Assembly (NCBI GenBank): GCA_002189035.1
Contig: NEEC01000014.1
Coordinates: 2,914,001 to 2,978,000, forward strand
Direction: 5' to 3'
DNA from: Utricularia gibba
Lineage: Eukaryota; Plantae; Magnoliophyta
Length of the DNA stretch: 64,000 nt
The notes under the pieces are model-generated. The model had not been told where the DNA came from. It made no database searches and worked only from the letters and a program-made list of their open reading frames with translations. Both the position numbers and the translations under genes were made by a program. Below are positions 5,443-40,500 of this stretch, in pieces (the first letter of the stretch is position 1; every line of letters starts with the position of its first letter).

Positions 5443-7289
5443 AGTCCCATCTCGTTGCTCCTTTTATTTCACATATTTATACTTGTTGTAGACTATAATC
5501 GATGTCTTGAGGTAAATCTGATTTCTTGGTGCAAGTCCAAATTATGTATACATTTTAACGGTTAAGATATTATTTTTGACTAATGCATGAATCGATAAAA
5601 GAGGTCAAGGATTTTTTTTGTGGAAACTTTTGAAATGGAAAAACTATAGAATTGGAGGATCTCACCAGAAAAATGTCTTCACTAAGGAGGCGAAAAGGAG
5701 GGTTACAAGTAAAGCATAGAATATATAATGATTTTCTCTTTAGACGTTCCCTTATTTATAGGGGAAGCTCGGCCGACTGATTTCTTCAAATGTTAGCTAC
5801 TTTCTATGTTTGATAGGTATATTGGCCATACTTGTGGTCCCGATTTCATATATTTGCTACCTGCTCTTAATTCTTGCAAGTTGGTTGTTTTTTAGGTTCT
5901 ATTGAAATGCTTGAGACCTAACATTGTCTAGCTCCAATTCCCGCAAGCAAACACTTACGTTATCGGTTGTCAGAGTTCATTCCCTACTTCTAAATTGATT
6001 TCTCCTTGTTATAATTTGCTATCTTGTTATAATCGATTTTCCCATTTTTCAAGTCATAATTTGTTATCTTGTTACTTATTTTCTTAAATCTAACCTGAAA
6101 ATAATTTAATATTATGATTTCCTAATAACAACAATATAAACTCTTCAAATCCTAAAGCACCCATCGGCAGAATTGTAATTTTTGAATCACTATTCATTAT
6201 CTTTTTTTATGTAAGTACCCTTGATTTTTTTTTGTCGAGTTATTATATTGTTTTCCTTTTTATTCATTTCTAAAACCTTAAATCATATAATTTTATGTAA
6301 AATGAATTAAAAACACTAAACCACATAACACAAAAAAATTATATGAAATAAATAAAGAATTATTTTATTGATTTGTATCGGTTGAGTGGTTTGGATCCGT
6401 CAATAAAACGGGCAGTCAAATCATATCGGGTTATTCCTGCCGATGGCATGCACATCTAACCAGCATGCGTGGTTCACCGGCTCCACCGAAAACTCTCATC
6501 TGTCAAGGAGATGTTTTCGATTTACATTCTAGTCTCTTCAAAAGAGCTACTAAACTATCGGACCAGTCAGGTCATTTTCAAAACCTCCCACTGCAAAAAA
6601 ACTTAATTCCAAAACCACCCACTGTGTATACTATGTATATAAAACCACTCATGCTAACTTTTTCTTTTCTATTTTGAATTACTTTTATTCTTACATATCG
6701 TACACATTTAAATATAATAAATATATATATTTAAATAATATAATTTCTATTATAAATATGTCAAATTTTATTTAAAACACCATTTATGTCACTCAAACTA
6801 ACTAATTAATAAAATATTTTTAAAAAATTACTCATATTTTAAAAATAAAAAATACACATTTATATTTCTAATATTCCTCAAGATATTTACGTTTTTTTTT
6901 TAAATTACAAAAATAATACATATATATTATATGTATCATTATTTTTGAACATATAATAATAGAAATCATGTTTTCCAATATATTATAATTATATTTCGAT
7001 TAATGAAAACAAATTTTACATATCTTAATTTATATTGAAATTGATACCGACAATAAAAATTACAGTGCGAGATTTTCAAGCACCGTAATAATCTATTACA
7101 GTTACTAAAATATACAACAATTTTAAAATAATAACAAAATATAATATTTATATTTATAATATTCCACAAGATATTCGATTTTTTGAAAAAATTCAAAGAT
7201 ATATCTTATATGAATCATTATAATACATATATATCTATAATATATCGATTTTTTTTATAATACAATAATAGAATTCATGTTTTACTATA

Positions 7290-7800
7290 TACTAATTGTA
7301 TTTCAATTTTACATATGTTAATTTATATTGACCGATCACTACAATTCATCAATTACAGTTATTAGAAATGAAAGTAATATAAGTAATACGATAATTCTCT
7401 ATTTTTTACAGTTATCAGAAATAAAAGTAATATAAGCAAAACGAAAATTGTTTATTTTTTCCAATCCTCGTAATCATCAATTACAATTACCCAAAATGAA
7501 AGTAATATAAAGAAAATGACAATTACTTATTTATGACGATCACTATAATTCATCAATTACAGTTACTAGAAATGAAAGTAATATAAGCAAAACGAAAAAT
7601 GTTTATTTTTTCCAATCCATGTAATCATCAATTACAGTTACTAGAAATGAATGTAACCAAAACGAAAATTGTTTATTTTTGCCAATCCCTTTAATCATCA
7701 ATTACAGTTACCAAAAACAAAAGTAATATAACGGAAACGATAATTGCATAATTATGCCGATCACTGTAATTCATCAATTACAGTTGCCAGGCAAATAATA
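7290..7800. repeat. Tandem array in left MULE TIR (~60 bp units, atcatcaattacagttactagaaatgaaagtaatataa core)
   Basis: At least 8 degenerate units containing caattacagtta; inverted counterpart at 14150-14870. Confidence 0.85.
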
Positions 7801-7936
7801 TTTTACATATTGATAATATTTATCCTTATTTCATAAACGACTCAAAAAATTTACTCATAAGTGACTTCTACTTCCTAGGCTATTGAGTAGACGATCTAGG
7901 AAGATCAAACCTAGTGTTCATACCTTGAGGTTGTTC

Positions 7937-10561
7937 TTAAAGAGATGATCGTGGTTGTTGAGAAACACCTTCGAAATCACGGTGATATGGTACATCAATA
8001 GATAGCCGATGGCTCTGAGGTGGACTATGTGCAAGTGAAGTTGTATCTTGTGAAAATCTTGGTCTCCCACTATGTCCACTTCTCCTTCCTGTGCTCCTTC
8101 CCTTATCCATATTCATCCTATATCGCGAACTACGTGTACGACCATGTCTAGTCATCTTTTTGCGTGTAGGAACATGAATGAGAGGCATTGTTGCTGGCCA
8201 ATGTCTCTCTACTCGAAGTGGATGGAATTGGACCTTGTATGCTTTCATCAAATGTTGTTGTAAGTGTATGGGATCCACATATTGTCTTAAATCAACTCCA
8301 AGTCTATTGCACGCCTGAAATAAACACGTCTTTCATATTGAATAAATGAACATTATTAAATCATAGTCTAACCTGTTGTGCATGTGAGCATGGTATTCCA
8401 TAATTTTGCCATTTGCAGCAAGTGCATTTGCCCTCCTTGATGCGCACCACACAAATGTTATCTTTCCCATTTGCTTTCCTTTGGGTGATTACATGAACTA
8501 TCATTTCGTAGTGATCATAAATCTCTACTCTTAAATAAGGATGAGACTTGTCCCAATGATCAAACAATCGTTGTGCTTGTGTCGAAAGGACTTGATTCTT
8601 CCTTTGTGCCTCTAGTGCCAACTCCAAACCTTCGGAAATATACTTTTTGCATCGAGCAAATGTAGCCTGCATGTTATTACATTCAAAATTTTCGGTAAAT
8701 TTAAAACACAAAACACAAATTAATCATACCTGAGCCAATGGCGTAAGTGGGAGATGTCGTGCTCCTTTCAAATCACTATTCATTCCTTCAACTTGATTGG
8801 TAGTCATTGTTCCATATCTTCGACTACCATCGTGAGATATTGTCCAAGCCTCGGGAGGAACATTCATTAAGTAGTTCCAAGCCACGATATTTATCATTCT
8901 AAGCTCTTCCATATAATCATATAATTTCTCCACGTACCCGGTGAATGATGCTTTAAGTAACAACATTCGAACCGGCTCAGATTTAAATCTTTCAAAGAAA
9001 TTTGCTCGAAAATGGCGAAAGCAATAGCGATGACATCCTCCAAATTCTTCACTGAATGCTGTAACTCTGATTGCTACCTTTCAAATAGAGTCACATCTAT
9101 CAGAAATCAAGCACGTGGGTTTTCCTAATGCAATGTAAGTTCCCACTAGCTCTAGAAACCATAGCCAAGAAGCATCAGTTTCTTCATCTAAGGCGGTCAC
9201 CGCAATGAGCAAAGGCAAGCGGCAAAATCTTTCCACATTGAGAGATGGTCACCGCAATGAGCATTTTGTGCCTGTATGTCACATACAAGTGCGTTGCATC
9301 GACTGAAATAACCGGACGGGTGTGCTGGTAGGCATGTATACATGGTCCAAACGCCCAGAAGTAATAGTGCAATGTGACTCCATCTTCCTTATTCCTCCAT
9401 TGGATTACGGTGCCTGGATTTTGTAAGGCAACTTCATTTAAGAAAGCTGGAAGTTTCTTTACTGATTCCTCCCATGTGCCATACACCTTCTCAAAGGCCT
9501 TTCGTATTCCATACCATGCACGTTTGTACGGTACTTCATAACCAGTTGTATCCAACACAACTGCAATAATAGTTGACACTTTGGTCCAATGTTTGCTTCA
9601 ATATATGGCTTGGCAATCTGAGAGATATAATCATGATTGATGTTTCTGTGATAAAAGAATCCCGCCCCCTGCCGCTTGCATGTATGAGGCTCAATAAGCT
9701 TTGAGATCTTCCATTTTCCCAATCGTTTATAATGAGCTGCACGAATCCTCCAGTTACAGTTTTGAGTGTCACGTTGTTTGCAATACATCTCCAAGACTCT
9801 AAGCCTAATGTCATCAACATTGAACTCCTTTCCAATTTCAATGGAAAATTCTATAACTTGTCTTTGAAAATCTTCTTTATCTTCAAATAGATCACCTTCC
9901 TTAAATCTCGATTCATATTGATGTGTGTATACTCCATGATTACTTGATTCTTCCCCTATATCATTCCGAATCAAAACTTGTGTTTCCTTCAAGCACATTC
10001 TCTTCGCCTTCTGAGTTTTGAGGAGTATGATCAATATCAGGAACCTCATTTTCATTAGTGAATTGCATAAATGAATCGCCATCAATATTTTGGATTGGAC
10101 TGAAATCATAATCAGCATATTCATCTATAGAAAAATAGAATATCATAAAATTAAAAAAAAACATATACAATTTCGAAATTTACAAGAAAGAAATAGTCAT
10201 TACCGTTGTCTCCAATTTGTGAGTGAGATTCTTCTGAAAAAAATGGGTCATATTCCACAAATAAATCCACCGGAGCAATAACATGGTTAGGTTCATGAAG
10301 ATAATCTAGGTTGCTCTGTGTCTCTAAATTCAAATACCTCGTTTCTCTAGTCACAACATCAAAAAACTGGGCAGATAATTTAAGATTGAACCTCAAAGAA
10401 GAGAATTGAACAATCTCATATAACCTTGCTTTTAATTCTTCCAATGAAATATTGGCATCTGACTGAAAAAACTGGATTCCCACACTATAACTTACGTAAT
10501 TCCCGTAATAATAGATTTGACCTCCAAAGAAGACCTTGTATGAGATAGATTTGAAAGCCAT
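7937..10561 (-). pseudogene. MuDR/MULE transposase (spliced, frameshifted)
   Basis: N-terminal YKVFFGGQI; MuDR domain FKEGDLFEDKEDFQRQVIEFSI...CNWRIRA; catalytic core PVISVDATHL...ILPLAFA, SWLWFL, CLISDR; TTNQVEGMN; SWIM finger KCTCCKWQNYGIPCSHA. Split over several frames. Confidence 0.92.
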
Positions 10562-11150
10562 CCAAATAGAGAGATATGTAAGAATGAGGTTGCAAGAAGA
10601 TGAGGTTCTTGAGAAGGATGAAAGAATGGTTTTCAAAAGCATTTCAATTTGAACAATTCAGTCATGTGATTGGGGCATGTGAGTCCAAAACATGGGGACA
10701 CATGTCAGTAGACTTTATTGATCTTGGAACATGTAGCTGTCGGTGTTGTCGGCTGATAATAGAATATAGGCGGCACACCGCAATGGAGAAACCAGTGAGC
10801 AGCCAAAGATATAATCAAAATTACACAAATAATAAAGATTTAGTATGTTTAACATTCTAAAAACGTGTGATTAAGTGTATTGTATGATGCAATAGAGAGT
10901 AAGTGTATACTTGTTTTTAGAGTAAAAAAAGTCGAAATCGAAGAATTTTTCACAATGAAACCCATTCTCATTACTACATCTAAAACACTACATAATCGTA
11001 ATAAGTTGCAAATTTCACATTTTTTTGAATCTTATTCATGTATGTAAAAAAAATTGTAATAAGTTGCAAATGATATATAATTCATAACTATGTTCAATAT
11101 ATGATCATATTTTTTAATCCCGTCTTCAAAACATTAATCAGATGGATTTA

Positions 11151-11192
11151 TAGGGTTTAGGGTTTAGGGTAAACAGGTTTACCCTAAACCCC
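11151..11192. repeat. Telomere-repeat (TTTAGGG) hairpin
   Basis: tagggtttagggtttagggtaaa-cagg-tttaccctaaacccc: 14-bp perfect stem gggtttagggtaaa/tttaccctaaaccc. Confidence 0.8.
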
Positions 11193-11799
11193 AAATATGG
11201 TCACTGTATATTCAATTACGGTGACCATCCGTAAATCTTCTATTTTTACCAGAATCACGTCAAATTTTACTTCACACGCCTTCCACTTATCACGTGCTAC
11301 AGTATTTTTGACTGAAAAAGTATCATTCGGTTCCCGATAAAACAGACTGACAATTTTCCTGAATTTATTAAATTGGGTTTTCAAAAACAAATTAATTACT
11401 TTAAAAATTTATTTACACTATTCTTCTCTTCCTTCTTCAACCACTTTATCAATCTTCTTATTTCAAAGCTTTTTTCATGCAGAACAGGTATGCTTTATGT
11501 GTAATTTTTGTTTATGTTTTTTTATATCTTAATGGTCATAGTATTGGGTTCTCTATTTCACGAGGATCTGAAAGCATACAAGATTTGTTTTATCTGAAAA
11601 TTTTCGTCACTGTATTGATCAATGTTGTGAGTGAATCTAAAAAGGATTGATGGCTTTCTTTTTTTTTTTTTTGAAATTATCGTCACCATAATGCGTTTGT
11701 TACAATGCATTGCTTTGAAAGTATCCCCACTCTTTTTCATTTTGAAATTACGGTCATTATAATGTGCAAAGATCTCAAAGCATATGAAACGTTATTTTA

Positions 11800-12350
11800 C
11801 TCTCGTCACCGTATTGTGTGATAATTGCAGTGCGTGGCTCTGAAAGTATGCATATGTTTATTATATTTTGGATTTGTAGTCACCATAATTCGTTCATTGC
11901 AGTGCGTGGCTTTATGCAGATGTTTTTTTGTTTTATATTTTTTCTGACTGTAATGCGATAATCGCGCTGTGTGACTATGAAATTATGCGAAGTTTATTTT
12001 ATTGTGAAATTTTAGTCACTGTATCTCTTTTATTGTGGTGTGTGGCCATGAAATTATGTGAAGTTGATTTTATTCTGATATTTTAGTCATTGTATCTCTT
12101 TCATTGCGATGTGTGGATATGAAATTATGTGAAGTTTATTTTATTGTTAAATTTTAGTCATTGTAATGACTTCATTGCGGTGTGTGGCTATGAAATTATA
12201 CGAGGCTTATTTTATTATGAAATTTGAGTCACTGAAATGCTTTCATTGCAGTGTGTGGCTATGAAATTTTAGTCACTGTAATGCTTTCATTGCAATATGT
12301 GGCTATGAAATTATACGAAATTTATTTTATTACGAAATTTTAGTCAATGA
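11800..12350. repeat. Internal tandem array (~60 bp) upstream of the MULE second gene
   Basis: About 8-9 units of ttttagtcactgtaatgctttcattgcagtgtgtggctatgaaattat..gaagtttattttatt. Confidence 0.85.
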
Positions 12351-12411
12351 AATGCTTTCGTTACAATTTATGGATTTGAAAGTATCCATTTTCATTGTTC
12401 TTTATGCAGAG

Positions 12412-14109
12412 ATGAACACATTAGAAAAGTTGAGGCTTCGATTCAATATTCCTGCAGAATATCAATTGTGGGATAAGGAAGAGGATGAAGAGATCGTTGG
12501 TGATATTCCAGAACGTGTTGGTCATAGGGGTTTTGCTATCAGTACTGAGCACCTTATATGTGGCTTGCGTGTGCCAGTGGTACCATTTATGTTGCAAGTT
12601 TTTGACATGCCTTCAAATTCGATTTTCACATTTGACTCCTAAGTTAGTGGCATATATATTGGCATGGGTTTACATTGCTTGTGAGGAAAGCATTCCCCTA
12701 GAATTGCCTATTTTCTTTGCTGTGAGCATGTGTAGTAGAATAAAGGATTCACCAAATTATGTGATAAAGGGTAAGTCTACAATTAAATTAGTGAAAGGTC
12801 TACGAAGTGGCTATGATAGTTGGTGGACAAGTTTTGTATGGGTTTCTCCTCCTGAAGATTTACCAAATGATTTTCCACGCACACTTCCAAATTCTCATCT
12901 TATTGGAAAACCACAAGGTATTTTATGTGTTAAACAATTTTTTATACTATGTTCTTTTATGAGAATTGTTCTGATTTTATTGATCTAATTTACTTATGTT
13001 TACTATTAGGTGTTGAGATGTTACCAAGGGATGTTGTTGATGAATTCATTGATTTCTTTAAAGGACAGACTAGGTCATTGAATACAATCCTACCTCCCAT
13101 CTTTAGAATCCAAGGCACAACCATGTTTTGGTGTGAGAAAAAAAGGATTACAAAGAATGATGATGATGTGGATGATCAAAGTGGAAATGATGCTGATAAT
13201 TTACACGAAGATGTGGCGGTTGACAATGAAACAAATGATTTGGCAGCTGAAAATGAGGCATTGAAGCAACAACTAAAGTGGTATCAATCCAGATGGCCTT
13301 CTTTCTGTGAATCAAGTAGTCATATTCCAACGGTGCAGAAATTAGTAGTATTCGACGTCAATGGGCGTCCAGATAAGTGGATTTATGGGCAAGCATGTAT
13401 GGTATTTATTTAGTATTTCACACATTTGCAACATATAGTTAGTTGCTAATTTATTGACTTGACTTTATTGCATATGTTATATTTTCAGTGTTTCTAAGAC
13501 CAAATGCTAGGGAGTTTATGGAATGATGTATGCAACATTTTGATGTTGCACTATGGTCTTCACGTGGAGGGTAACATACAAAATATTATATTATCTTTTT
13601 TATATATGTTTTACATGTTATTCTTTTTATAATAGTGCACAACTAAACCAAGTCATTAATTGGATGTTTGACGAGAAGATGTCAAATTTGGCATTCATAT
13701 GGGATGGAACGAAATGCACCACCACAAACCTTCGAGTCCTCAAGAAGCCTTTCATGGCCGGTATACACATAGTAACACCTTGTTGGTAGATGATTCATCA
13801 TACAAGTTTACAACAAATCCGGTAATAATTTTAGTTAAAAATTTAATAAGTTAAATTTTATTTTTTTAGTTTAATTATACTCTACTGGTTCTCAAATAGG
13901 TTGACAATGCCATATTTCCATGCTCCTACAAGCACACGGATCATAAAAAAGATTCATCTTTTATGGAAGGGGGTGAGATGAAGACTTTTCTTGAAGGACT
14001 TATAGATGCATCTGATGTACCATCCTTTGTGCGTGATTTTCGTATTGGTCAAGCCCCAATGATTGAAGACCATCCAGACTGGGAGTATTACAAAGCATTA
14101 GTAGAATAA
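12412..14109 (+). pseudogene. MULE accessory gene: Transposase_28-like N-terminal domain + acidic/coiled-coil linker + FCP1/NIF-like (HAD) phosphatase domain
   Basis: Exons about 12412-12917, 13010-13396, 13489-13570, 13636-13821 and 13900-14109. Introns are GT-AG and the last three are phase-consistent. N-terminal LRLRFNIP...LICGLRVPVVPF...SHLTP...WWTSFVWVSPP; C-terminal KLVVFDVNG, LFLRPNAREFME*CMQHFDVALWSSR, AFIWDG, SNTLLVDDSSYK, NAIFP..Y, GGEMKTFLEGL..ASDVPSFV...IGQAPMIEDHPDWEYY. One TGA stop and about 2 frameshifts. Confidence 0.8.
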
Positions 14110-14149
14110 TTCTCATTTTCTATTTCATTATGCATATTAGGAGTACTTT

Positions 14150-14870
14150 TGCTTTATTATTATCTAGTAACTGTAACTGATGATTACGGTGATCGGCAGA
14201 AATAGGTAATCATCATTTTGCTTGGTAGAGTACTATAAGCATATTCTCTGAGAATTGTAATTGATGATTATGATTATCGGCAGAAATAGTTAATCATCGT
14301 TTTGCTTAATAAAGTATTATAAACATTTTCTCTAATAACTGTAATTGATGATTACGGTGATCCGTAGAAACAGGTTATCATTTCCTTATATTACTTTCAA
14401 TTCTGGTAACTGCAATTGGTAATTACGGTGACCGTAAAATTTAGAGATACAAACTATTACTCGAGTAATTCTTATTTTCTCTTTTATGCTTGTTCGGAAC
14501 ACTTTTGCTTAATAGACTACTATCACCATGTTTTCTAATCACTGTAATTGATGAATTATAGTGATCGACAGAAATAAACGATTATGATTTTTCTTATATT
14601 ACTTTTATTTGTGGTAACTATCATTGATGATTACAGTGATTGTTAGAAATAGGCAATTATTTTTTTTATATTAATTTTATTTCTAATAAGTGTAATTGAT
14701 GAATTGTAGTGATTGGAAGAAATATATAATTATCATTTTCTTTATATTAGTTTCCTTTCTAGTAACTGTAATTGATGAATTGTAGTGATCGACATAAATA
14801 TGTAATTGTTGTTTTCTTTATATATATATTTTTATTTCTGATAACTGTAATTAATGAATTACAGTGATCA
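14150..14870. repeat. Tandem array in right MULE TIR
   Basis: Units containing taactgtaattgatga; reverse complement of the 7290-7800 array. Confidence 0.85.
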
Positions 14871-15933
14871 ACATAAATAAAAAATATATGAAATGATATT
14901 TATGATTTTTTATTTCATTTATTATTTATAAAAGAATATATAATATAATTTGATTTTTCATTTTGTTTAAATTATTTATTTTTCTATTGTTTAATTGTAT
15001 ATATTTTTGAATATATAATAATTAAATAAAATATACATTATGAAAAATTTAATTTGATTTTTTTTTATTTATTATAATTTTTGAATTCTAAAAAAGATAT
15101 TTTAATAATATTTATTACAATATTTGCAAAACGAATGCAATATATTTTTATTTTTTTGTAAAAAAGATAATAGTATTAAAATATGTTGTCAAAAGGAAAT
15201 TCAAAAATGGAAAAAAAAATATGTAGGATGGGTGGTTTTGACACGCAGTATAGATGAGATGCACACAATAGGTGGTTTTGAAACTGAGTTTTTTTGCAGT
15301 TGGTGGATTTGGTAAAAACTCCGAACCAAGACACACAAAGGTAAGCTTTAATTCATGGGTTTTACATGTAAAATAATTAAAATTTATCCATGGTGCAATT
15401 TTGAGAATTAGAAAAAAGATAAATTTCTTCTTTATTTAATCACCATTCTCGCAAACCATTTACAAACCCAACTCATAGATCCCTTGGCACATAGTGTATC
15501 GCGCATCGTATCCCAAACCTACGTACTGCGTGTGCGTGGGTATGCGCACCTTGAGTTGCAGTTGGTTACCTCTCCCCTTGTTTTTTTGTTGAGATTTGGA
15601 TTTGGGATGGCACGGCACGTGGTCCACACGAACCGTGCCTTTTTCCAGCTTTTGATAAGCTTTTGCATTTTGGTCAGCTGCATTTATGCCTCTTGTTTCT
15701 TACCGGAATTTCTCTGTTACTGAAGCTTTTCAACCGCCCTCCTTTAATGTCCGCCTCCTTCATCCGCCGGTAATAAATTTAAAATTGAAAACCTCAACGC
15801 CTTACTGCTTTGACTTCTTCGCCTCACACCTTTTCCCATTTCCGTCTATAAATAGGCATAGTCTTTTGCAGATTTGTTTTCCATATAACCCACCCATCTG
15901 TGCTGTTAAAATACCTGAACGACAGGTACAAAT

Positions 15934-18108
15934 ATGATCAGGTTGGTCACCGGAATCCAGGGCCGAGCGGCTTCGGATCGGCTTCCCACGCGGAGGAGGT
16001 TACTCAGGGGATTGATGCTTCTCATCTAACCGCGATAATCACAGGTTCGACATTTTCGCTCTCTCATTTTAGTTATCCGTAACTTCGTTGGCTAGTGGAG
16101 TTTCTTCCATCACATTTGAATTCTTTCTTTGCGCATACACCTGGTTTTTCTTGAGTTTGTGACGGCGCTGGGCGAAGGACGTGTACCGTTCTGTACGCCG
16201 TCTCTCGTCCTCACCACCATCACAAAAAAATAAAAAACAGTAAACTCGAAAGAGCAACCCCAAAAAACCTGTTCCTGTTTTGTTTTCTTACCTCCCTCTT
16301 CTTCATGTCGTTTTCCTCTCCGGTCCCCCTACCCGTCCGTTTCGTCGCATGGGTGGCCATTACTACACCAACTTGTCGCTGGCTTTCCATAGAGCAGAGT
16401 AGGGTGTCCTCATTGCGAATCTTAGAACAAGAACAAACACACACACGCGCACTCATCTGTGAAATACAATTAGGTCAACCAGACTGCGTTAGAAGCGTCA
16501 CGCCATGTGAGCAGTCACAAAAGTGGGACATTTTTTCATTTTTTTTGTTTTTTTTTTTTTTTTTGTTGTGGGTGGGTGGTTGGAATTGAGAAAAATGGAC
16601 TCCCACCATGTGAGTTCACCGATGAGGAGAGCGAGTGAATAGGCCTTCAACTTAAATTCATTAATTTGCCACAGTCCCAAGCACCAGAACATTCATTAAG
16701 TATTTGGTCAACTAGGGACAAGCCAAGATGGTCACCCACCTCCATTATTGGACACGTAGCTTAATTCCTCCCCATCGTCAACTTCTTAGGGGTTTCAGTT
16801 TTTTACTGGATCATAATTTCCTCATAACGCGCTAGTCATTTTCTTTTAGGAGGTGCAAGTGGGATCGGGTTGGAGACAGCAAGAGTTCTGGCGCTGAGAA
16901 ATGCGCATGTTGTTATCGGGGCAAGGAACATTGAGGCTGCAAATGAAGCCAAGGAAAGGATCCTGAGTGAGAACCCCAGTGCTCGTGTCGATGTGCTGAA
17001 ACTGGACTTGAATTCACTGGACTCCGTTAAATCCTTCGCCGACAGCTTCATTGCTCTCGGTCTCCCTCTCAACATCCTGATGTGAGTGGGTTCGATCCTT
17101 CTGTATGTTATTCCAGAGGAACCAAGTAACCAATTGAACTGTGTCGGTTTTGTGTTTCAGAAACAATGCAGGGATCATGTTCTGCCCGTTTCAGCTCTCC
17201 GAAGATGGGATCGAAACTCAGTTCTCCACTAATCACCTAGGTAGAAAAAAGAAAAATATCCATCTTTTTCACTGGATCAGAATTGTCTCCCGTGAAGATT
17301 AGCATTCTTCCTGTGTGGGGGAGTTGTGATTTTGCAGGGCATTTCTACTTGACCAACCTTCTCATCGGTACGATGAAGGAAACGGCGAAGAGCTTCGGCG
17401 TGGAGGGTAGAATAGTAAATTTATCATCTGTAGCCCACATCTACACCTACCCTGGGGGGATCAATTTCGAGTTGATCAACGATGAAACCAGGTAGTTTCT
17501 CGGATTTACCCTTTTTCGGGACCGAAATTCCTCTTACAAGGACGCCGGTTCATGTTCAGGTACAACGAGAAAAAGGCGTACGGCCAGTCCAAATTAGCAA
17601 ACATCCTCCATACAAACGAGCTCTCCCGCAGATTCAAGGAAGAGGGTGTGAATATCACTGCTAACTCGGTGCACCCTGGGCTTATAATGACGAATCTGTT
17701 CAAGTACAAGGGCTGGCTGAGTAAGTTTCCAAATCCAACACAAGCAAAGCATTCCCTTTTTCTTGCTGTTGAAGTCTTAAGTCATAAAGGACTTTTCACT
17801 GCAGAAATCGTCAAGCTATTCAGCTTCTTCCTGTGGAAAAATGTACCTCAGGTAAATAAATACTTCCTTCTTTCAGATTGTGTTATCAGATTAAGTCATT
17901 CTATTTTTGGGAATGTCAGGGAGCTGCGACGACGTGCTACGTGGCGCTTCATCCTCAGTTGAAAGGGGTATCTGGAAAGTATTTTGCAGACTGCAACATG
18001 GCAAAGACGAGCTGGTTCGCAAGGGACCAAGTTCTGGGCAAGAAATTGTGGGATTTCAGCAACAAGCTCATCAACGCAGCTGAATCCACTTCTAAATCTC
18101 TTTTTTAG
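15934..18108 (+). CDS. Short-chain dehydrogenase/reductase, TIC32-like (7 exons; apparent 1-nt frameshift in exon 1)
   Basis: Exons 15934-16044, 16850-17081, 17161-17240, 17338-17491, 17560-17720, 17805-17851 and 17920-18108, all GT-AG. Motifs [27 protein letters not shown] (cofactor binding), INNAG, NLSS, YGQSK (YxxxK), SVHPG and [12 protein letters not shown]. Confidence 0.93.
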
Positions 18109-18419: not shown

Positions 18420-19480
18420 TGAGTTCAACCATGAGTGCCATTGAATTATACATTTCTTGAAGATGCCATTGAACCTTCATAAGCCAAGGGTGTGGGAAAT
18501 TGATTGCAACCCACGAATTGCGTTTTTCCAATTGGCCAATTGTTAGTGCTATTTAAACTCATCAAAGACGATACAAACGTTTGACAGGTTGAGACTCTAA
18601 TTTATAATTCCCAAGATCTTATTCCTAAGGGACAAAGAGGCCATTGAGACCATCGATGGTGAGTTGCTACATTGAAACCTTTTCGTTGTGGTCTGAAATT
18701 GTTGTTGCCATCTTTTTTGGTTGAGTTACTGAATTGCTTGGATGTTCTGTTGTCTCAACTATTATCCAAATTGATTGCATATGTTCTAAAATTAATCTAT
18801 GTGTGTTTTGAAAAACATCTAGTACCTGCCATTCTAATATTTATAGCAGTTAATATATGTATGAAGAATTGGAAAACCAACTATTTCTCTCTAAAAGTAA
18901 AACAGGGTATAACATTGGTAAAAGAGATGTGAGGTAGATATGAAGACAAGTAGATCAACTTTGTGTGGGTGTCCCCTTAGGAGGATCTAGATTTTCTCAC
19001 TAAACTTGAGTCTTCATTGATTGTCGTAAAGGCAAAGAGTATGCTATTATCATCTTTATTTTGCACCACCCATTAAAATCTAATATACTTAATTTGATAC
19101 ATTTAGTGTAAGGTTTGAGAGTTTGCTCAAAGATGGAGTAAAACTTTTTTGTAATGAGAGTAGGTATTTGAGTGATATACTGCCATAATTTGTAAATGCT
19201 ATAGGGAAGTGACATTTCTAGTGTGGTCAAACTAAGGTGTCCCACAGATGCCGAAAAATACAAGCTGAGTTATTGAGCACGATGTTATAGAGGAATTCCT
19301 TAACAACACTTAAGTTCATTAAGAGACCCACAACATATGCATTAGTCATCTTATAGATAAGAATAGGACACTTCCTGTTAAATTCAAATGGTAGAAGAGT
19401 ATTTTGGCCTATAGTGGCACCTCAATGTTTGTTGTGAAACCACCTTACATGTTGATTGTATTTCATGTTCATGATGTGTA
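18420..19480. mobile_element. Highly degenerate Copia-like pol remnant
   Basis: Faint RT-like traces on + (LIPKG..ETF) and a KHIEVHY-like RNase H trace on - near 19420. The orientations are inconsistent, so the assignment is tentative. Confidence 0.3.
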
Positions 19481-23489: not shown

Positions 23490-25575
23490 CCGGTACAACC
23501 ACCGAAAAGAGAGTCTAAGGAGGTTTATTGATCGATTCAATTGCCAAGCACAAGATGTCCAATCAGACCTTAAGGAGAGAGTGGAGATAACGAAGGAAAT
23601 TGATACCCGAAATTCCCCCCTAGGCAATCAGGAGGGCCATCATGCGCCGGCAGAAACACGAATCTTGAAGGGGGATGAGATAAACCGGATGGCTCAAGGG
23701 ATGCTAGCCAGGGATACCGGGGATTTGAAAGTCAAGTTTCCGACTCTAAGGGGCATTTGCACGCTGGATGTCGACCAACTAGCCACCCAATCTTGTTATG
23801 TATCTTCTTGCCGTGACCCATGCGCGAAGAAATCGAGAATAATGATGGTGGAAAGGGAACACAGGGAGCCTCCCAGACAAGCAATGGAATCGGTAGGATA
23901 CAAGCAATTGCAGTTGATACCGAGGGATATGCAGAAGACGACCCGCATTGGCACCAACCTAAATGCCAAATTCGAGAGAGGATTAGTGGAACTTCTGAAG
24001 AAGAATACCGATATCTTCGCCTGGACTGCTGCGGACTTTGTAGGTATCAGTCGAGCTGTCGCTGAACACCGTATTGATACCTATCCGGGAGCAAAGCGAT
24101 CCGACAGAAGCAACAACATTTCTCCGAGGAAAAGTGCTGGATTATCAAAGAAAAAAATGAGAGAGCTGCTAGAAGCCAGCTACGTAAAGGAGATTCAGTA
24201 CTTGGAATGGGTGGCCAACCCTATCGTTGTTCCGAAGCCAAGAGGAAAATGGAGAATGTGTCAATTTCACGGACCTCAAAGTTTGTTGTGAAAGGGATCT
24301 TTACCCCCTCCCGAATATTGACAAATTGATGGATGCCATCGCCGGATCTCGATTTCTGAGCACCATGGATGCATATTCCGGATATCACTAAATTTTTGTC
24401 ATAGAGAGGGTTCAGCCGAAAACCACCTTCTACACCAAGGATGGTGTCTACTGCTACGTTGTGATGCCCTTTAGTTTGAAGAATGCTTGGGCTACTTATC
24501 AGAGATTGGTGAACAAAATCTTCTCTTTTGAAATCGGTACCTCCATGGAGGTGTATGTGGACGATATGATCATGAAATCAATGAATGAAGAAGATCATTT
24601 GGCTTATTTGGATTCTTGTTTCTCTCTTTGTTGGTCATACGGGTTAAAACTCAAGCCGCTAAAGTTCTGATTTAGGGTGCAAAGTGGAAAAATCCTTTGA
24701 CATTACGTATCAGAGAGAAAAATTGAAGCCGACCCCGCAAAGATTAAAGCAATATGTGAAATGGAACCCCGAGAACAATTAAGGAGTATCAGAGTCTCAC
24801 AGGTGAATTGGCCACCCTTACTCGATTCATATCTTGATCGGCAGATAAGTTGGCATCTTTCTTCTAGGCTCTTCAAAAGGGAAACACTGTGGAATGGAAC
24901 GAGGATTGTCAAGTTGCCTTCGAAAAATTCAAGGAATATCTTTCATCGTCCCCACTGTTGGTGGCTCCGAAGGAAGGAGAACCCTTGGAGCTCTACTTAT
25001 TCATATTGCCTGTTGCGGTTAGTGCAGTCCGAACCACTATTTCAGAGGAAAAACACCTGCCGATATATTATGTGAGTAAGGTTCTTCTATCAACAGAAAC
25101 CCGATATACAGTAACTGAGAAGTTCATCTTGGCCTTGAAAATGGCCGCCACGAAACTGAAATCGTATTTCCAAGATCGGAATATCGTGGTATTCACCAAT
25201 CAACCGTTGAAGAATATTCTGTCTCAACTTGAAATCTCCGGAAGGGTAGCTAAATGGGTAGTTGAATTGAGCACAATGGATATCGAATTCAGATCAAGAA
25301 CGGCAATCAAGGCCCAGCCACTCCCCAATTTTGTGGCCGAGATGACCAGGCCAATTGATCGATTCGTGGAAACCAATGGCGTATGGGCCATGTATGTGGA
25401 CGGTTCGACATACAACAAGGCTGGAGGAGGAATCGACATCAGAACTCGGGATGGAGATCACATTTTTATCACGGTGAAATTCTCATTCCCTACCACTAAT
25501 AATACCATCGAGTATTAAGCCCTGATTGAAGGAATGAAGGTGGCCAAAGAGCTTGGAGTTGCACCAAGGAAGCCC
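23490..25575 (+). pseudogene. Gag-pol remnant (gag, RT, RNase H, additional RNase H)
   Basis: ORFs 23581-24291, 24461-24670 and 24889-25518 carry RT/RH motifs; frameshifts and stops between them. Confidence 0.9.
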
Positions 25576-25847
25576 TAAGTAAAGTTCTTACTACCGAATC
25601 TTGAGACAGTAATTGCACCCGAAGCAGATCCGACTATGCCCCGAAAGCATAAGATATCTGGCCAGTAATTGCTACCAAGATCTCAAAATGTACAAAAAAA
25701 CCCCGAATCGGGGGCCAAAAACATCACTCTCAGAAGAGAGAAATTAGGGTTCGGGAAGGGGATCAGTTGAGGGGCCAACATGTCCCTCTAGCCTCGCTCT
25801 CAGCTTAGACTCATTTTCCCGCTGGATCCTTGCCTGAATCAGCGCAA

Positions 25848-27741
25848 TCAGTCGCTCCCAACTACCTCAAATCCGAATTTCGGGGCTTGATACACGTCCA
25901 TGATGACATCCAGCATGTTATCATCCTTCGTCAAGGGGTTGATCCTTTTGAAGCGTGGATCAGTGATTGATACCCCGAATTCGTGGCTGAATAGGCGCCT
26001 CTGCCGATACAGGAGCAGCCTGATTAAGTCCCCAGCATAAATGTTGGACAGCTTGGAGAAGCAAGTCGAATTGATGAAATCATCCAGAAGTCGCCGTCGA
26101 GACGCTTCTTGATTAACCAACTCGGCCTCCAAAGCCAAGACGCGGTACTTAGCATGCTTGAATTCCGCTTCCGCCTCTTCGAACCTTACTTTGAAGCCCT
26201 CCTTTTTGGAGTTGGCATCGTCGATCGCCTTCCCCATCTCGTAGACCACATTCTGCAACTCTTCCTCCCAACGAGTACGCTTTTCGAGAACTGTCCTCAA
26301 CGAACTCCCTTCCTCTTCCAGCAACTTTATTTTGGTGCCTTGAGCCGCAGAGTGGGCTTGAAGCCGGGAAACCTCCTCCGATTGAGTCTTGATCTCCTTC
26401 GCCATCCCCTGCCGAAGGTTAAAGCCTGAAAAGAAATCACCAAGTAAGTAACTGATTACGTACAAGTCCATGAAAGGAAAAGGGGAATACCTTCCAGATC
26501 CCCTTAAATATAATGTTTGGCTGAACCCCCGAGAGACTCGGGGGTCACTTCCTCCAAGACTCTTCACAGTTCATGAGGAAATGAAGACGGGGGGGGGGGG
26601 GGGGGTATTTTATCCCCTTCTAAAAGCTGATCAGCGGCATCCAACTGAACTTATGGGGAACCAGCCGAGAAGAATTGGAAAGGGTCAGAATCGGAAATCT
26701 GTTACAACAGTTCATATAAACCGAACCTGAATGGGAGAGGCGACATCAGGTTCTTGCATCCTTTGCATCTCGACAAAGAAGTGGGCCATCACCGAATTTT
26801 CTAAAGCGGTTCTCTGGGCCATCTCTTCAGCTGCAGACGAAAACCGAGAGAAGAGTAAGATGCAGTGCAAATGTTGAAACTCAAGGAAACATAACCTAAC
26901 TACCTCTTTGCTTCTTAGAGGGTTTATAAGCTAGCGCCTTAACCCTCTTCTTTTTTCTGGGGGCCATGGGTTGAACATTTGAGGGAATTGGGGATGAGAC
27001 AGATGCCAGGGGGAGACTCGGAGAAGGATTAGAAGGAGGAATTTGTAGATCGGCACCTTCGGAAGGAACGATGTTGGGCTAGTGGCAGTCACAAGAACAA
27101 CCGATAATACCCGATCTTTTCAATGACTCCCCGAAAACATCAAAGCACGAGATTCGTATTGGGTAGACCCTTAGCTAAGCCTTTCAAATAGGACTTCGGG
27201 GATTTGGTAGATGGCCAATAAGTACCGAAGAGTTTTACTCTGAAGGGTGTGGGAGGATCAACTAGGAAGTTCCACCGAAAACCCAGAGGGGGTGCCACCC
27301 AGACAAAAGAAGACCACCAATCGTGGTGGGTATCAGGGGCTTTCACAATGAAGTTATAGCCGAATGAGATCGGTGAAACTGAAAATGAGATCGGCCAACC
27401 GTCGGAGACTTTGCTTTGCGAACAGCTACTAAAGTCATAGCCGAATCCATGCCAACCGAATAGAACAAGAAGGTAGTGAAGCAGAAGATGGAGTTGGGGG
27501 CAAGGCGGTAAAGCGGGATGGCGAAAGTGTGAAGAAAACGGACTATCAAAGGATGGAGGGGGAAAAGTAAACCGCTTTCGAAATAAGCGAGGGGAATCGG
27601 CAGGCTAAAGAGAAGAAGGGGACTTTCACCTAACCACAAGGGGATTTTGGTATCCCGAGCATGGGAGACGATGTATTCATGGGGGATAGAATATCCGATG
27701 CGAAGGGAATGGATATTCAATTTACTAAACCTCCTAACCAT
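25848..27741 (-). pseudogene. Antisense extra ORF of the Tat/Retand element: Transposase_28-like domain + coiled-coil
   Basis: LRIGYSIP...FESGLLFPLHPLIVRFL...LAPNS; WWSSFVWVAPP; heptad-rich region (EVSRLQAHSAAQGTKIKLLEEEGSSLRTVLEKR...) behind a cttttcag acceptor at ~26426. Confidence 0.75.
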
Positions 27742-29974: not shown

Positions 29975-31418
29975 CACTATGCATAACGCCTGAGCCTTAA
30001 TCGGATACATGAACAATTTGCCTAGCCTTCCGTGCTTGGTTGTAGCTTATGCAAACCTGCAATTTCCTGTTTACCTCATTTCTAAAACTGTCTATGTCCA
30101 GGTTTGGATTTTCACAGAACCTATACATGAACCTTTGAGCCAACCATGAAGCAGTGATCGTACCATTGGACAACACCTTCCCACAGTTAGATGCATGGTT
30201 GGGGTTAACTAACCTCTTAACTACCCATCCATTACCATCCTTGAGTTTACGAGCATAGACCACCCAGCCACAATCTGGTGTTGCACACTTAGTCTAAATG
30301 GAAAAAAATTGTTATCCAATGTAACAACAAAAAAAGAAAATAAAACAATGTAAAGTTAGATACTTTCAAACAGATTGAATCATTTTTTTTCCATTGAATC
30401 TCCTTTCCATTCTCAATTGCATGCCTAATAATGGCTTCTCGGGCATGTGCTTTTCCAAAAAAATGAAGCCCTTCCTTAAGTTCTACATACTTAAATCCAT
30501 GCTTAGGATTGTACACTGGTTTGTGGCTACCTTCCTGAATATACTCATTACCATCACCTACATTTACATCTAATTCATCATTTGAAGCTGCACAATTAGG
30601 ATCATTAACTTGTACTTCGTCTTCATCTTCTTCACTTACATTTTTCTGTTGTTCGTCACTGGGTTCGTCACTTACAATTAGGATCATTAACATGTAATAA
30701 TCATCTTCAAGAACTATCTCATCACTGTCCTTTTTAAGCTCATCATCCAAAGGTATATCTTGAAGACTAGTATCATTATCCTGTTCAAGCTCATAACATA
30801 TTGTATCCAAACCCCTTTTGATCACATCATAATTGAAATACTCCAAAAAAATACAAATACTAGCACGCCCCATAAACTTCCTTCTAACTATATCACAATC
30901 TGCCTCATTAGAAATAGTCTTCCAAATTGTATTCCTCCCTTCAATATACTTAACCCAAAAACGCATATGAGTAGGAATCGTAAACCCGAAAGGCCTTACC
31001 AAATTTAATAACATACTCACTGATATATCGAAACCCTTGGCATCACGCAGAGCTTCCAAACCTGTTCCTCGGTATTTTTGAGGTCCATCATATGCCATGA
31101 ACCCACTGTGACGCAAGAATACAGTTTTCCACCCCATTTTGCAACCCTACCCACAAGCAATTCCCAATTGCAATTGACAGAGGGAAAAGATGAAATCAGG
31201 AAACGAACCTCTGAAAACGGAACATATGATTTTCACAGCATAAATGTGTGAAATTACATGTTTAGCCTTCGATTTAACGGAGCCAGACGACACTTCACGT
31301 TGAGGGACGCACATGAAATCACATTTACCTAATGAGGATTAAATTGGTATCACTTTAAAAATGGGGACAAAATCATGGCAACATGGGAAGCACTAGGGAC
31401 CAAATCGGTTCTTTGGCC
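29975..31418 (-). mobile_element. 5' part of a second MULE (MuDR transposase N-terminal half + TIR)
   Basis: LKEGLHFFGKAHAREAIIRHAIENGKEIQWKKND; GCATPDCGWVVYA...NH; ITASWLAQRF. TIR-like sequence near 31330-31418 (..ctagggaccaaatcggttctttggcc). Cut off at the Tat LTR. Confidence 0.85.
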
Positions 31419-38199: not shown

Positions 38200-40500
38200 C
38201 AACCAGAATGGAGTTTTCTTTAGTTGGAGCATCTGTCATGGGTTCTTGAATTTCATTCATCATGCTATCTTTGCTTTTTTATGTCTTGGAAATAACTTTT
38301 TTCTTGGAAAAAAAACATCACACAATAAATATTTTTAATATTTATAATAATAAGCATGCAAACACTAATCAATAAAGCAATTAATGTTCAATCTTAATTG
38401 GGAGAATTGGCTTCATGTGACTGTTGTTTTTGTTTTCAAGTTCGTGCATTATGGTCTGGCATTTTACAAGTAGTGCACAATATCACATGTGCCTCACTGA
38501 ATGATTTTTTCCTTCTATCAAGTCCTACGAGAGGTTCATCTGGTAATCTTTTTCTATTTTTGGATGGTCTACCAACTTTTTTCCTTGCTGGCAATGCTTC
38601 TAGAGATGGTTTATCAACACGAGGCTGATATTTAGATGAACGTATGCCAATAACAAAACTTTGGTAAGCAGCACGGTATTCTTCCATAGTGTAGTATTGA
38701 TCTATCCACCTATAGGAATCCTCCCTAGAGGCCCGTAGCGCACAAATAGCATGGCTACAAGGGATTCCAATAAGTTCCCATCTTCGGCATGAGCATGATT
38801 TCAATGCTAGATCAACACAAACTTGTTCAAGTTAACCTTACAGTAACTTGCCAAATAAGATCATTGCTAGGCTTTGGTGTATAATGCTTTGAATTTTCAA
38901 CAGATTTATCAAACAACTTGCAAATGTGAGGACAAATAGTTGTTGTCCATTTCTCTCCCATCTATCGACAATTGCACAGCCTAACCATCACAAGTTTTCA
39001 AATCAAGTCAAGTAGCTGAATAATTGATTTGTCTCTCACTTGTAAAATAAAAGAATTAAAACTTTTTGACATATTATTCAGCAGTGTGTCGCATTTGGTG
39101 TGCATATTAAAGAACACATTGCACCAACATTTAGCAGGTTTTCCTTCTAACCACTTTTAAGCATCAGAGTCAAGAGCTTTAAATTGTTGCATTGCGATGT
39201 CAAAAATTTCAGGAGTGGATGCTCTGACTGCTTTCCAAAATGATGTCTTCAATAAAGGTGAACTATATCCAGCATGCTTCATATTTGTATACTTATCTAG
39301 CATAGAATCGATTTTCAGCTTCAGGAAAAATAATATCAAATGCTAGAAGCAGTCCCTTGTCTTTATTAGATACAAAACAATATTTGTACATATTTGTTGC
39401 ATCGATTTCCAAGTCACTCCACAATAGGGTTAGAAACCATAGCCAACTTTCTTTATTCTCCCTTTCTACAATTGCCCATGCAATGAGCAAAATGTTATTA
39501 TTTGGATCCAATCCAACAGTTGCAAGAACTTGTCCTTGAAATAGACTCTTCAAGAAACATCCATCGACACCAATAATGAGTCTACATGCTTTTAGAAAAC
39601 CTTCCTTGCTTGCTTTAAAGCACATGTAAACCCTCTGAAATTTTTTGGAAGTTCCAAAACTTGGTAGAACATGAAATACACATCGTGTTTTTGAGTTAGA
39701 TTTCTTAACCCCAGCTGTTTAATTATACAACTTCTTAAACTGATCAATGTGATGACCATTGATGATTTTCATTGCCAACGCTTGTTCTCTATAAGCTTTC
39801 ATCAGGAAGATACAAACACTAAGTTTTGGGAAATCATATCTTTGAAGAGCCTTGGTGTGAGTTTTCTATTTTGCCGAAACTTCTTCAAATATGTTTTACC
39901 AAGACATGTAGAAGTAATACCCATATTTCGATGTTGATGTCCACATTCATCATGATGTTTATCTTGAAATTCTCTCAATGTCAATGAGCCATTATTACGA
40001 AATTTACTGATGCAAATCATCCACAGACAGCCTTCTTGTACACATTTCGCTTCTATACGCAAAGCCTTGTTTTTTGTAAACCTCACATTCTTTCCTTGAC
40101 AATAGCAATGTTGTTTAATAGCATCTCTTACTTCATCTTTAGAATGAAACTTCATGCACAAATTAAATTCAGGTATCTTCTTACACGTTTTAGGATTGAA
40201 GAAAGAGCTCTTGTCAAATTTGGCTTCATCTTCTGAGCAAGTCATGTCACTATCAATATCATCATCACTTAAGGTGCAACCAACATCATTTGCATCATTT
40301 ACAAACTCAGAATCTACAGCATCTATGCCACTGCTACATAAAGCACTTGCTTTCTTTAAATATTCATCATAATCATTGTCAATGTTAACATCTTTTTCTA
40401 TTTCATAATCCGAATCAATCAAACTTTCTAATTCATCATCAGAGCCAATGTATGCTTCGTTCTCCTCATAGTTTATATCCCCAAGTTCACTCATTCAGCC
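38200..40500 (-). pseudogene. MuDR/MULE transposase (third element), decayed
   Basis: FNLCMKFHSKDEVRDAIKQH; CLWMI; CRLIIGVDGCFLK...GLDPNNNILLIAWAIVERENKESWLWFL; SWIM SCSCRRWELIGIPCSHA; zinc knuckle CTTCKMPDHNART. Confidence 0.92.

Follow-up and report, generated by a model that had tools for sequence, protein, structure and literature searches.

Few plant DNA transposons are known to carry a dedicated second gene, and two such genes, VANC and mudrB, have revealed how elements escape silencing. A stretch of 64,000 nucleotides from Utricularia gibba (assembly GCA_002189035.1, contig NEEC01000014.1, positions 2,914,001 to 2,978,000; the whole stretch is called the window here, and all coordinates refer to it) raises the question of whether a Mutator-like element (MULE) can hold, besides its transposase gene, a gene that fuses a transposon-type domain to a domain of the NIF/FCP1 family, and whether such a gene belongs to an element family or to a single copy. 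An initial annotation of the window had proposed such a fusion, with a Transposase_28-like first half, and suggested that it might be a family-level accessory gene rather than a one-off captured fragment. In this study, the region 6570-15321 was found to be a single transposon of 8.75 kb, in which two genes are enclosed by terminal inverted repeats (TIRs) and mirrored subterminal arrays. The best explanation, which we consider likely to be right, is that a chimeric, divergently transcribed second gene, composed of a retrotransposon-type N-terminal domain and a host 'DxNG' NIF domain, is a feature of this MULE family.

The second gene, hereafter the accessory gene, lies on the plus strand at 12412-14109, divergent from the transposase gene, and consists of five exons separated by four GT-AG introns of 92, 92, 65 and 78 bp, whose junction phases agree with the frames demanded by homology. 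Exon 1 (12412-12917) encodes the retrotransposon-type N-terminal domain and is interrupted by a 1-base insertion near 12599 (frameshift region 12599-12616). Exon 2 (13010-13396) contains NIF motif I (KLVVFDVNG) together with an acidic linker and a short stretch resembling a coiled coil; exon 3 (13489-13570) contains the region of motif II (FLRPNAREFME, VALWSS), with an in-frame TGA at 13524-13526; exon 4 (13636-13821) runs from FIWDGTKC through SNTLLVDDSSYKFTTNP, with a frameshift near 13717-13720; and exon 5 (13900-14109) completes the NIF-like domain at its C-terminal side (AIFP, GQ, HPDWEYY) and includes the stop codon. With these three lesions, one stop and two frameshifts, the accessory gene of the window copy is dead. 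The divergent five-exon gene with coherent splice phases had been predicted initially, as had its decay by a TGA and about two frameshifts, and every one of the HAD/NIF motifs named at that stage is present in the translation.

The element that carries this gene is delimited by a left TIR of ~130 bp (6570-6700, plus strand) that aligns with the reverse complement of the right TIR (15190-15321, minus strand). The end-to-end alignment extends over 176 columns, flanking bases counted, with a mean column identity of 78%, and its inverted-repeat part is ~130 bp long. A 49-nt TIR core is 84% complementary to the right end, and a 19-mer core occurs at two sites in the 64-kb window, which are the two ends themselves (chance expectation 0.01). 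The right end is further marked by a fall in the depth of mapped contigs (described below) in the bin 15250-15449, which contains the flank. Inside the TIRs, a left subterminal array of tandem 53-75-bp repeats (7320-7820) is inverted with respect to a right array of 76-84-bp repeats (14150-14890); the arrays adjoin the outer sides of the two genes, which occupy the space between them. The left flank (CGGACCAGTCA) and the right flank (CGAACCAAGACA) share 8 matches in 11-12 aligned positions with one indel and form an approximate duplication of ~11 bp; for MULEs, a target-site duplication of 9-11 bp is expected. Thus, the proposal that one TIR-bounded MULE holds both genes stands, and the coordinates given for it in the initial annotation were accurate to within a few bases.

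The other gene of the element is a decayed MuDR-type transposase gene on the minus strand (7937-10642). Its open reading frame (ORF) pieces lie in several overlapping frames, and the gene is therefore broken. Matches to DBD_Tnp_Mut (9462-10124, E 0.0017), MULE (9084-9579, E 0.017 and 0.051) and SWIM (8364-8711, 25.5 bits against a cut-off of 19.6) are arranged along the minus strand in the order usual for MuDR. The first two domains score below their Pfam cut-offs, as expected of a decayed gene split into pieces. Two further MuDR-like remnants with DBD_Tnp_Mut matches are found in the window at 30292-31137 and 38700-40494 (both minus strand), with no NIF-like gene nearby. A link between them and the element was considered and rejected, since they are only distantly similar, belong to other MULE families and have no accessory gene.

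The spacer between the divergent genes contains a 71-bp repeat array on the plus strand (11570-12390, ~nine copies, including TAGTCACTGTAAT and ATTGCAGTGTGTGGCTATGAAATTAT), which ends 20 bp before the ATG of the accessory gene, is conserved in many contigs from the DNA runs analyzed below, and is possibly a promoter region. The same spacer also holds, at 11146-11198, a near-perfect palindrome of plant telomere-type repeats (TTTAGGGTTTAGGGTAAAC / GTTTACCCTAAACCC), which might be a telo-box-like promoter element.

The simplest alternative to a family gene is a one-off event, either a Pack-MULE-like capture or a nested insertion, limited to the window copy. The window alone is compatible with it, as only a single copy of the MULE family is present there and no second one was found elsewhere in the 64 kb. 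A repeat search of the element found no repeat pair bracketing the plus-strand gene; an origin of this gene as a nested element was rejected for that reason, and nothing else suggests a nested insertion. Besides, the element has its own transposase, unlike a Pack-MULE. To these observations we added Logan contigs from four DNA runs, three labelled with the species of the window and one labelled 'plant metagenome', which were mapped on 9450-15449 at a likeness of at least 80%. Each run contributed between 262 and 5113 contig pieces, and the matching contigs show 80-99% likeness to the accessory gene. The transposase part, the spacer, the 71-bp array, the accessory gene and the subterminal repeats are all covered at depths of the same order, and the depth drops in the last bin, which contains the flank, clearly in runs X10, X13 and X11 and not clearly in X8. 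For each listed difference in run X13, ~10-17 distinct variant contigs were recorded, in the transposase and in the accessory gene alike. The gene is represented by hundreds to thousands of contig pieces in all four runs, with as many variant contigs as the transposase, and the one-off explanation, which we regard as extremely improbable, is largely refuted by contig coverage. The accessory gene is a feature of the MULE family and is not confined to the window copy, as the initial annotation had conjectured.

The contigs also bear on the state of the other copies. At position 12599, one base is missing in all of the depth of X8 and X11 and in about half of that of X10 and X13, which indicates that most or all of the other copies are free of the exon-1 frameshift. 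Differences of the C>T and G>A kinds are strongly over-represented in run X10, which also shows AT-rich loose ends and is probably bisulfite-converted DNA; it was therefore given lower weight, and its joints and depths are not readable as structural variants. Taken as a whole, the structural account, according to which the element is a dead copy of a multi-copy, autonomous-type MULE, is in our view probably correct.

We then asked what the C-terminal half of the accessory protein is. The initial annotation had assigned it to the NIF/FCP1 type and had proposed a Pfam check for both NIF and Transposase_28. When the separate exon pieces of the window copy were searched against Pfam, no match to either was obtained up to E 1, the pieces being too short; the NIF half of the assignment was established instead through a hidden Markov model (HMM) of verified PF03031 proteins. 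For this purpose, a degenerate DNA pattern for LDLDETL[IV]H was used to collect ORFs from giant-virus contigs, and all ten ORFs checked were PF03031 proteins (62-174 bits). The HMM built from these ten proteins was scored against the C-terminal half, joined across its breaks with X, together with all 1153 ORF pieces of the window. The joined half scored 32.8 bits (E 2.9e-9), the next best sequence was the exon-4 piece of the same gene (9.9 bits), and all the remaining pieces scored 4.5 bits or less. The alignment spans the RPxxxxF motif, WSS, NTLLVDDS and NPxxN, and motif I of exon 2 aligns with LDLDETL of the viral NIF proteins and is the counterpart of LDxNG in host genes. Together with the match at E 7e-25 to PF03031 relatives described below, this result identifies the C-terminal half as a NIF/FCP1-type domain.

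Among the viral references, one giant-virus clade (L005, L014, L016, L024, L032 and L041) has NIF motif IV as IDDR instead of the usual DNSP, plus VWSAG, and provides the best single-sequence matches to the transposon domain. Several other searches were negative or uninformative. A phmmer search of exon 2 against 1.84 billion representative proteins returned two spurious acidic FG-GAP matches and no relatives; word-index protein searches with exon 5 and the exon-1 region gave no match; a hybrid alignment of giant-virus NIF proteins and accessory-gene pieces, used as query, retrieved giant-virus NIFs alone; ESM Atlas look-ups for the accessory gene were uninformative; PDB sequence searches with its pieces found nothing relevant; and a metagenome scan queried with exon 5 yielded no confirmed relative.

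Closer relatives were obtained with a second degenerate pattern, for NTLLxDDxPYK, which collected 120 metagenome loci. By tblastn, the conceptual protein matched 69 of them, in the C-terminal half only, with a best E of 7e-25 over residues 274-457 of the 458 in the X-joined protein; no match to exon 1 or the linker occurred in any of the 120. The six host-type relatives that were checked with Pfam all proved to be PF03031 proteins (58-145 bits), and exon 5 is 36-51% identical to the host-type loci. Motif I of these host relatives reads LDLNG, LDVNG or LDING; in some plant copies arranged in tandem it is MNLNG. FDVNG of the transposon protein therefore keeps the first aspartate and has asparagine at the second, as is found across the host subgroup, in place of the canonical DxDx(T/V). 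The replacement of DxDxT by DVNG had been described initially as a trait of a plant NIF subgroup, and the host sequences bear this out: DVNG is the normal state of a plant/algal host subfamily and no transposon-specific change.

The intron positions are also informative. The exon plan of host genes was read from low-GC, intron-bearing genomic loci (for example L143, L087, L159 and L042), and three of the four introns of the transposon gene coincide with host introns in both position and phase: the first in phase 1, in the codon preceding [FY]xRP; the second in phase 2, two codons past WSSR; and the third in phase 0, directly after NP. The introns that flank exon 3 agree in position and phase with those of host genes L143 and L087. 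The transposon gene lacks two further host introns, one of which is likewise missing from at least one host paralog (L088). Exon 4 covers what is split between two exons in host genes, the intron lost there being the one after LLFCW. The shared introns indicate that the NIF part was captured with its introns from a plant host gene, as genomic DNA and not by retroposition; exons 2-5 derive from a host gene that belongs to the 'DxNG' branch of the NIF/FCP1 HAD family.

A maximum-likelihood tree with host-type NIF genes shows a split with 98% support in the SH-like approximate likelihood ratio test (SH-aLRT), and the transposon domain is placed on its plant-like side, on a long branch (1.16 changes per site). 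No sampled host gene is more than 47% identical to it. The host consensus is nevertheless kept at 36 of 44 strongly conserved columns, as opposed to 29 of 101 variable ones. Under uniform decay, ~53% of the conserved columns would be expected to be retained (binomial 5.7e-5), and the observed retention suggests a long period under constraint.

Two further arrangements were seen among the host-type NIF genes. The plant-like genomic metagenome contigs L042 (1-8331) and L120 (1-8239) contain three tandem small NIF genes of this type, ~3.3 kb apart, whose motif I is MNLNG or MNING, so that the first aspartate is lost as well; to judge from this motif, they look like pseudophosphatases. In L058 (1977-3758, minus strand), a single ORF of 594 residues encodes two tandem DxNG NIF domains (LDVNG and LDING).

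The N-terminal half is connected to known domains less directly. PF04195 (Transposase_28) matched neither the pieces of exon 1, in which the frameshift of the window copy splits the region of the model, nor an uninterrupted related fragment (18672-18929), up to E 1. The window also contains a Ty3/gypsy remnant (24889-27741) of the Retand/Tat type. Its reverse transcriptase-RNaseH ORF is on the plus strand (24889-25515); downstream, in antisense orientation, comes an extra ORF (27741-25848, minus strand). The N-terminus of this extra ORF scores just below the cut-off for PF04195 (E 5.5e-5, 23.7 against 26.2 bits), and its C-terminus is a coiled coil. Exon 1, joined with X, aligns collinearly with the N-terminal portion of the extra ORF (27741-27143, minus strand) at a Smith-Waterman score of 80, which was reached by none of 2000 shuffles (31 +/- 5). 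According to Neumann et al. 2019 (PMC6317226), 23% of Retand elements have Transposase_28 in their extra ORFs. By this two-step chain, the label 'Transposase_28-like' given to the N-terminal half at the outset seems reasonable, if less well founded than was stated there: a direct PF04195 match was not found, but a significant similarity was, to a gypsy ORF that itself scores just under the cut-off. Exon 1 encodes a domain of the kind present in the extra ORFs of Retand/Tat Ty3/gypsy elements. A closer relative of exon 1 than the gypsy extra ORF is a sequence at 18571-19037 (plus strand; local score 171), an isolated, stop-ridden fragment of the exon-1 domain that is 35-44% identical to exon 1 and has no NIF part; it sits just downstream of a putative host gene resembling short-chain dehydrogenases (17283-18108).

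The presence of the N-terminal domain in gypsy extra ORFs also speaks for another explanation, namely that the gene belongs to a different mobile unit or to an independent gene family and that the MULE lineage acquired it secondarily. On the other hand, coverage of the spacer and the transposase is similar to that of the gene, so that the whole MULE family appears to carry it, and we consider a secondary acquisition of this kind unlikely.

The main rival explanation is that the accessory gene is a selfish passenger without a role in transposition, formed once by capture, spread with its carrier family and decaying neutrally since then. The window copy is broken in three places, no listed RNA run contains the accessory gene, and the shared introns fit a Pack-MULE-style capture of intron-bearing host DNA, which is common in plants. 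Against such a history, conserved positions have been kept far better than variable ones despite the long branch, and one lesion at least, the exon-1 frameshift, is missing from most or all of the other copies. We regard a neutral passenger as a possibility of some substance, if still on the unlikely side.

Several observations weigh against the preferred account of a chimeric family gene and should be considered together with it. Besides the lack of listed RNA runs and the lack of any Pfam match for the separate exon pieces, the N-terminal half is linked to PF04195 indirectly and at a score under the threshold. Part of the excess of retained conserved columns could be due to an unsampled source paralog. 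The target-site duplication is imperfect, as is expected of an old insertion whose repeats have drifted ~20% apart. Finally, contig depth does not measure copy number, short contigs cannot tie each gene copy to a transposase, and copies in other transposons could add to the contig coverage.

With regard to function, the second aspartate of motif I is the general acid/base in SCP1/FCP1. The host subfamily keeps the nucleophile aspartate and has asparagine in place of the acid/base residue, and because of this loss a role as a slow phosphatase, or as a module that binds phosphoproteins, is more likely for the protein than one as a normal CTD phosphatase, that is, an enzyme acting on the C-terminal domain (CTD) of RNA polymerase; ordinary CTD-phosphatase activity seems doubtful. 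One could imagine that the NIF-like module is carried by the transposable-element-type domain to chromatin or nucleic acid of the element itself, and that the module there binds or dephosphorylates a host phosphoprotein, such as the polymerase CTD or a silencing factor, to the benefit of the element. Such tethering, with an anti-silencing or transcription-promoting role, is offered as a tentative guess that is rather unlikely to be right as it stands. More doubtful again is a broader version, in which the fusion of a retrotransposon-type domain to a host-derived, pseudophosphatase-like NIF domain would be a selected functional accessory protein, exchanged between unrelated transposon superfamilies in this plant, that acts on a host phosphoprotein to favour expression of the element; if true, it would define a new class of transposon counter-defence or host-manipulation factor.

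If the chimeric family gene is read correctly, a whole family carries a gene that was put together within mobile DNA; its parts are a retrotransposon-type domain and a complete host domain with introns, and the host domain is drawn from an uncharacterised NIF branch that has no catalytic acid/base residue. Should an intact copy prove active, it would offer a route to the role of the host subfamily and to the recruitment of host phospho-signalling modules by transposons; should it be inactive, the gene would be a clear, datable case of exon shuffling via transposon capture. Literature searches for a transposon-borne NIF gene found no paper.

The two halves of the gene can be compared with their closest known counterparts. 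With SCP1/FCP1 CTD phosphatases, the transposon domain shares the Pfam family NIF and the order of HAD motifs I-IV; it differs in motif I (DVNG instead of DxDx(T/V), the general acid/base aspartate being missing), and the transposon protein has no BRCT or other CTD-targeting module. Since the second aspartate of motif I is missing, SCP1/FCP1 chemistry cannot be assumed. The likeness to the plant/algal DxNG branch of NIF proteins covers the entire domain: the sequences are collinear from KLVVFDVNG to HPDWEYY and share the motifs, three introns and the asparagine in motif I. The N-termini of the DxNG host genes are short and unrelated and lack a retrotransposon-type domain, unlike that of the transposon gene. 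With the extra ORFs of Retand/Tat elements (Neumann et al. 2019, PMC6317226), as represented by the gypsy ORF of the window, exon 1 has in common an IPxEY start and WWxSFVWVxPP; the identity is only ~25%, and the gypsy ORF continues into a coiled coil whereas the accessory gene continues into the NIF domain.

At the level of the whole element, the likeness to Pack-MULEs is that the host part was taken up as genomic DNA, with three host introns kept in position and phase. Pack-MULEs are non-autonomous, have no transposase and carry gene fragments, whereas the window element has a transposase, its captured domain is complete and has kept family-conserved residues, and it belongs to a multi-copy family. 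The accessory genes of plant MULEs include mudrB of MuDR, VANC of VANDAL elements and the ULP1-like protease genes of KAONASHI-type MULEs, and mudrA and mudrB are convergent or divergent partners. We know of no sequence relationship between the accessory gene and mudrB, VANC or ULP1-like genes, and it differs from them in combining a retrotransposon-type domain with a host NIF-like domain in one chimeric gene, known so far from its sequence. What it shares with them is its position as a second gene, here divergent from the first, within the TIRs of a transposase-bearing MULE, common to the family.

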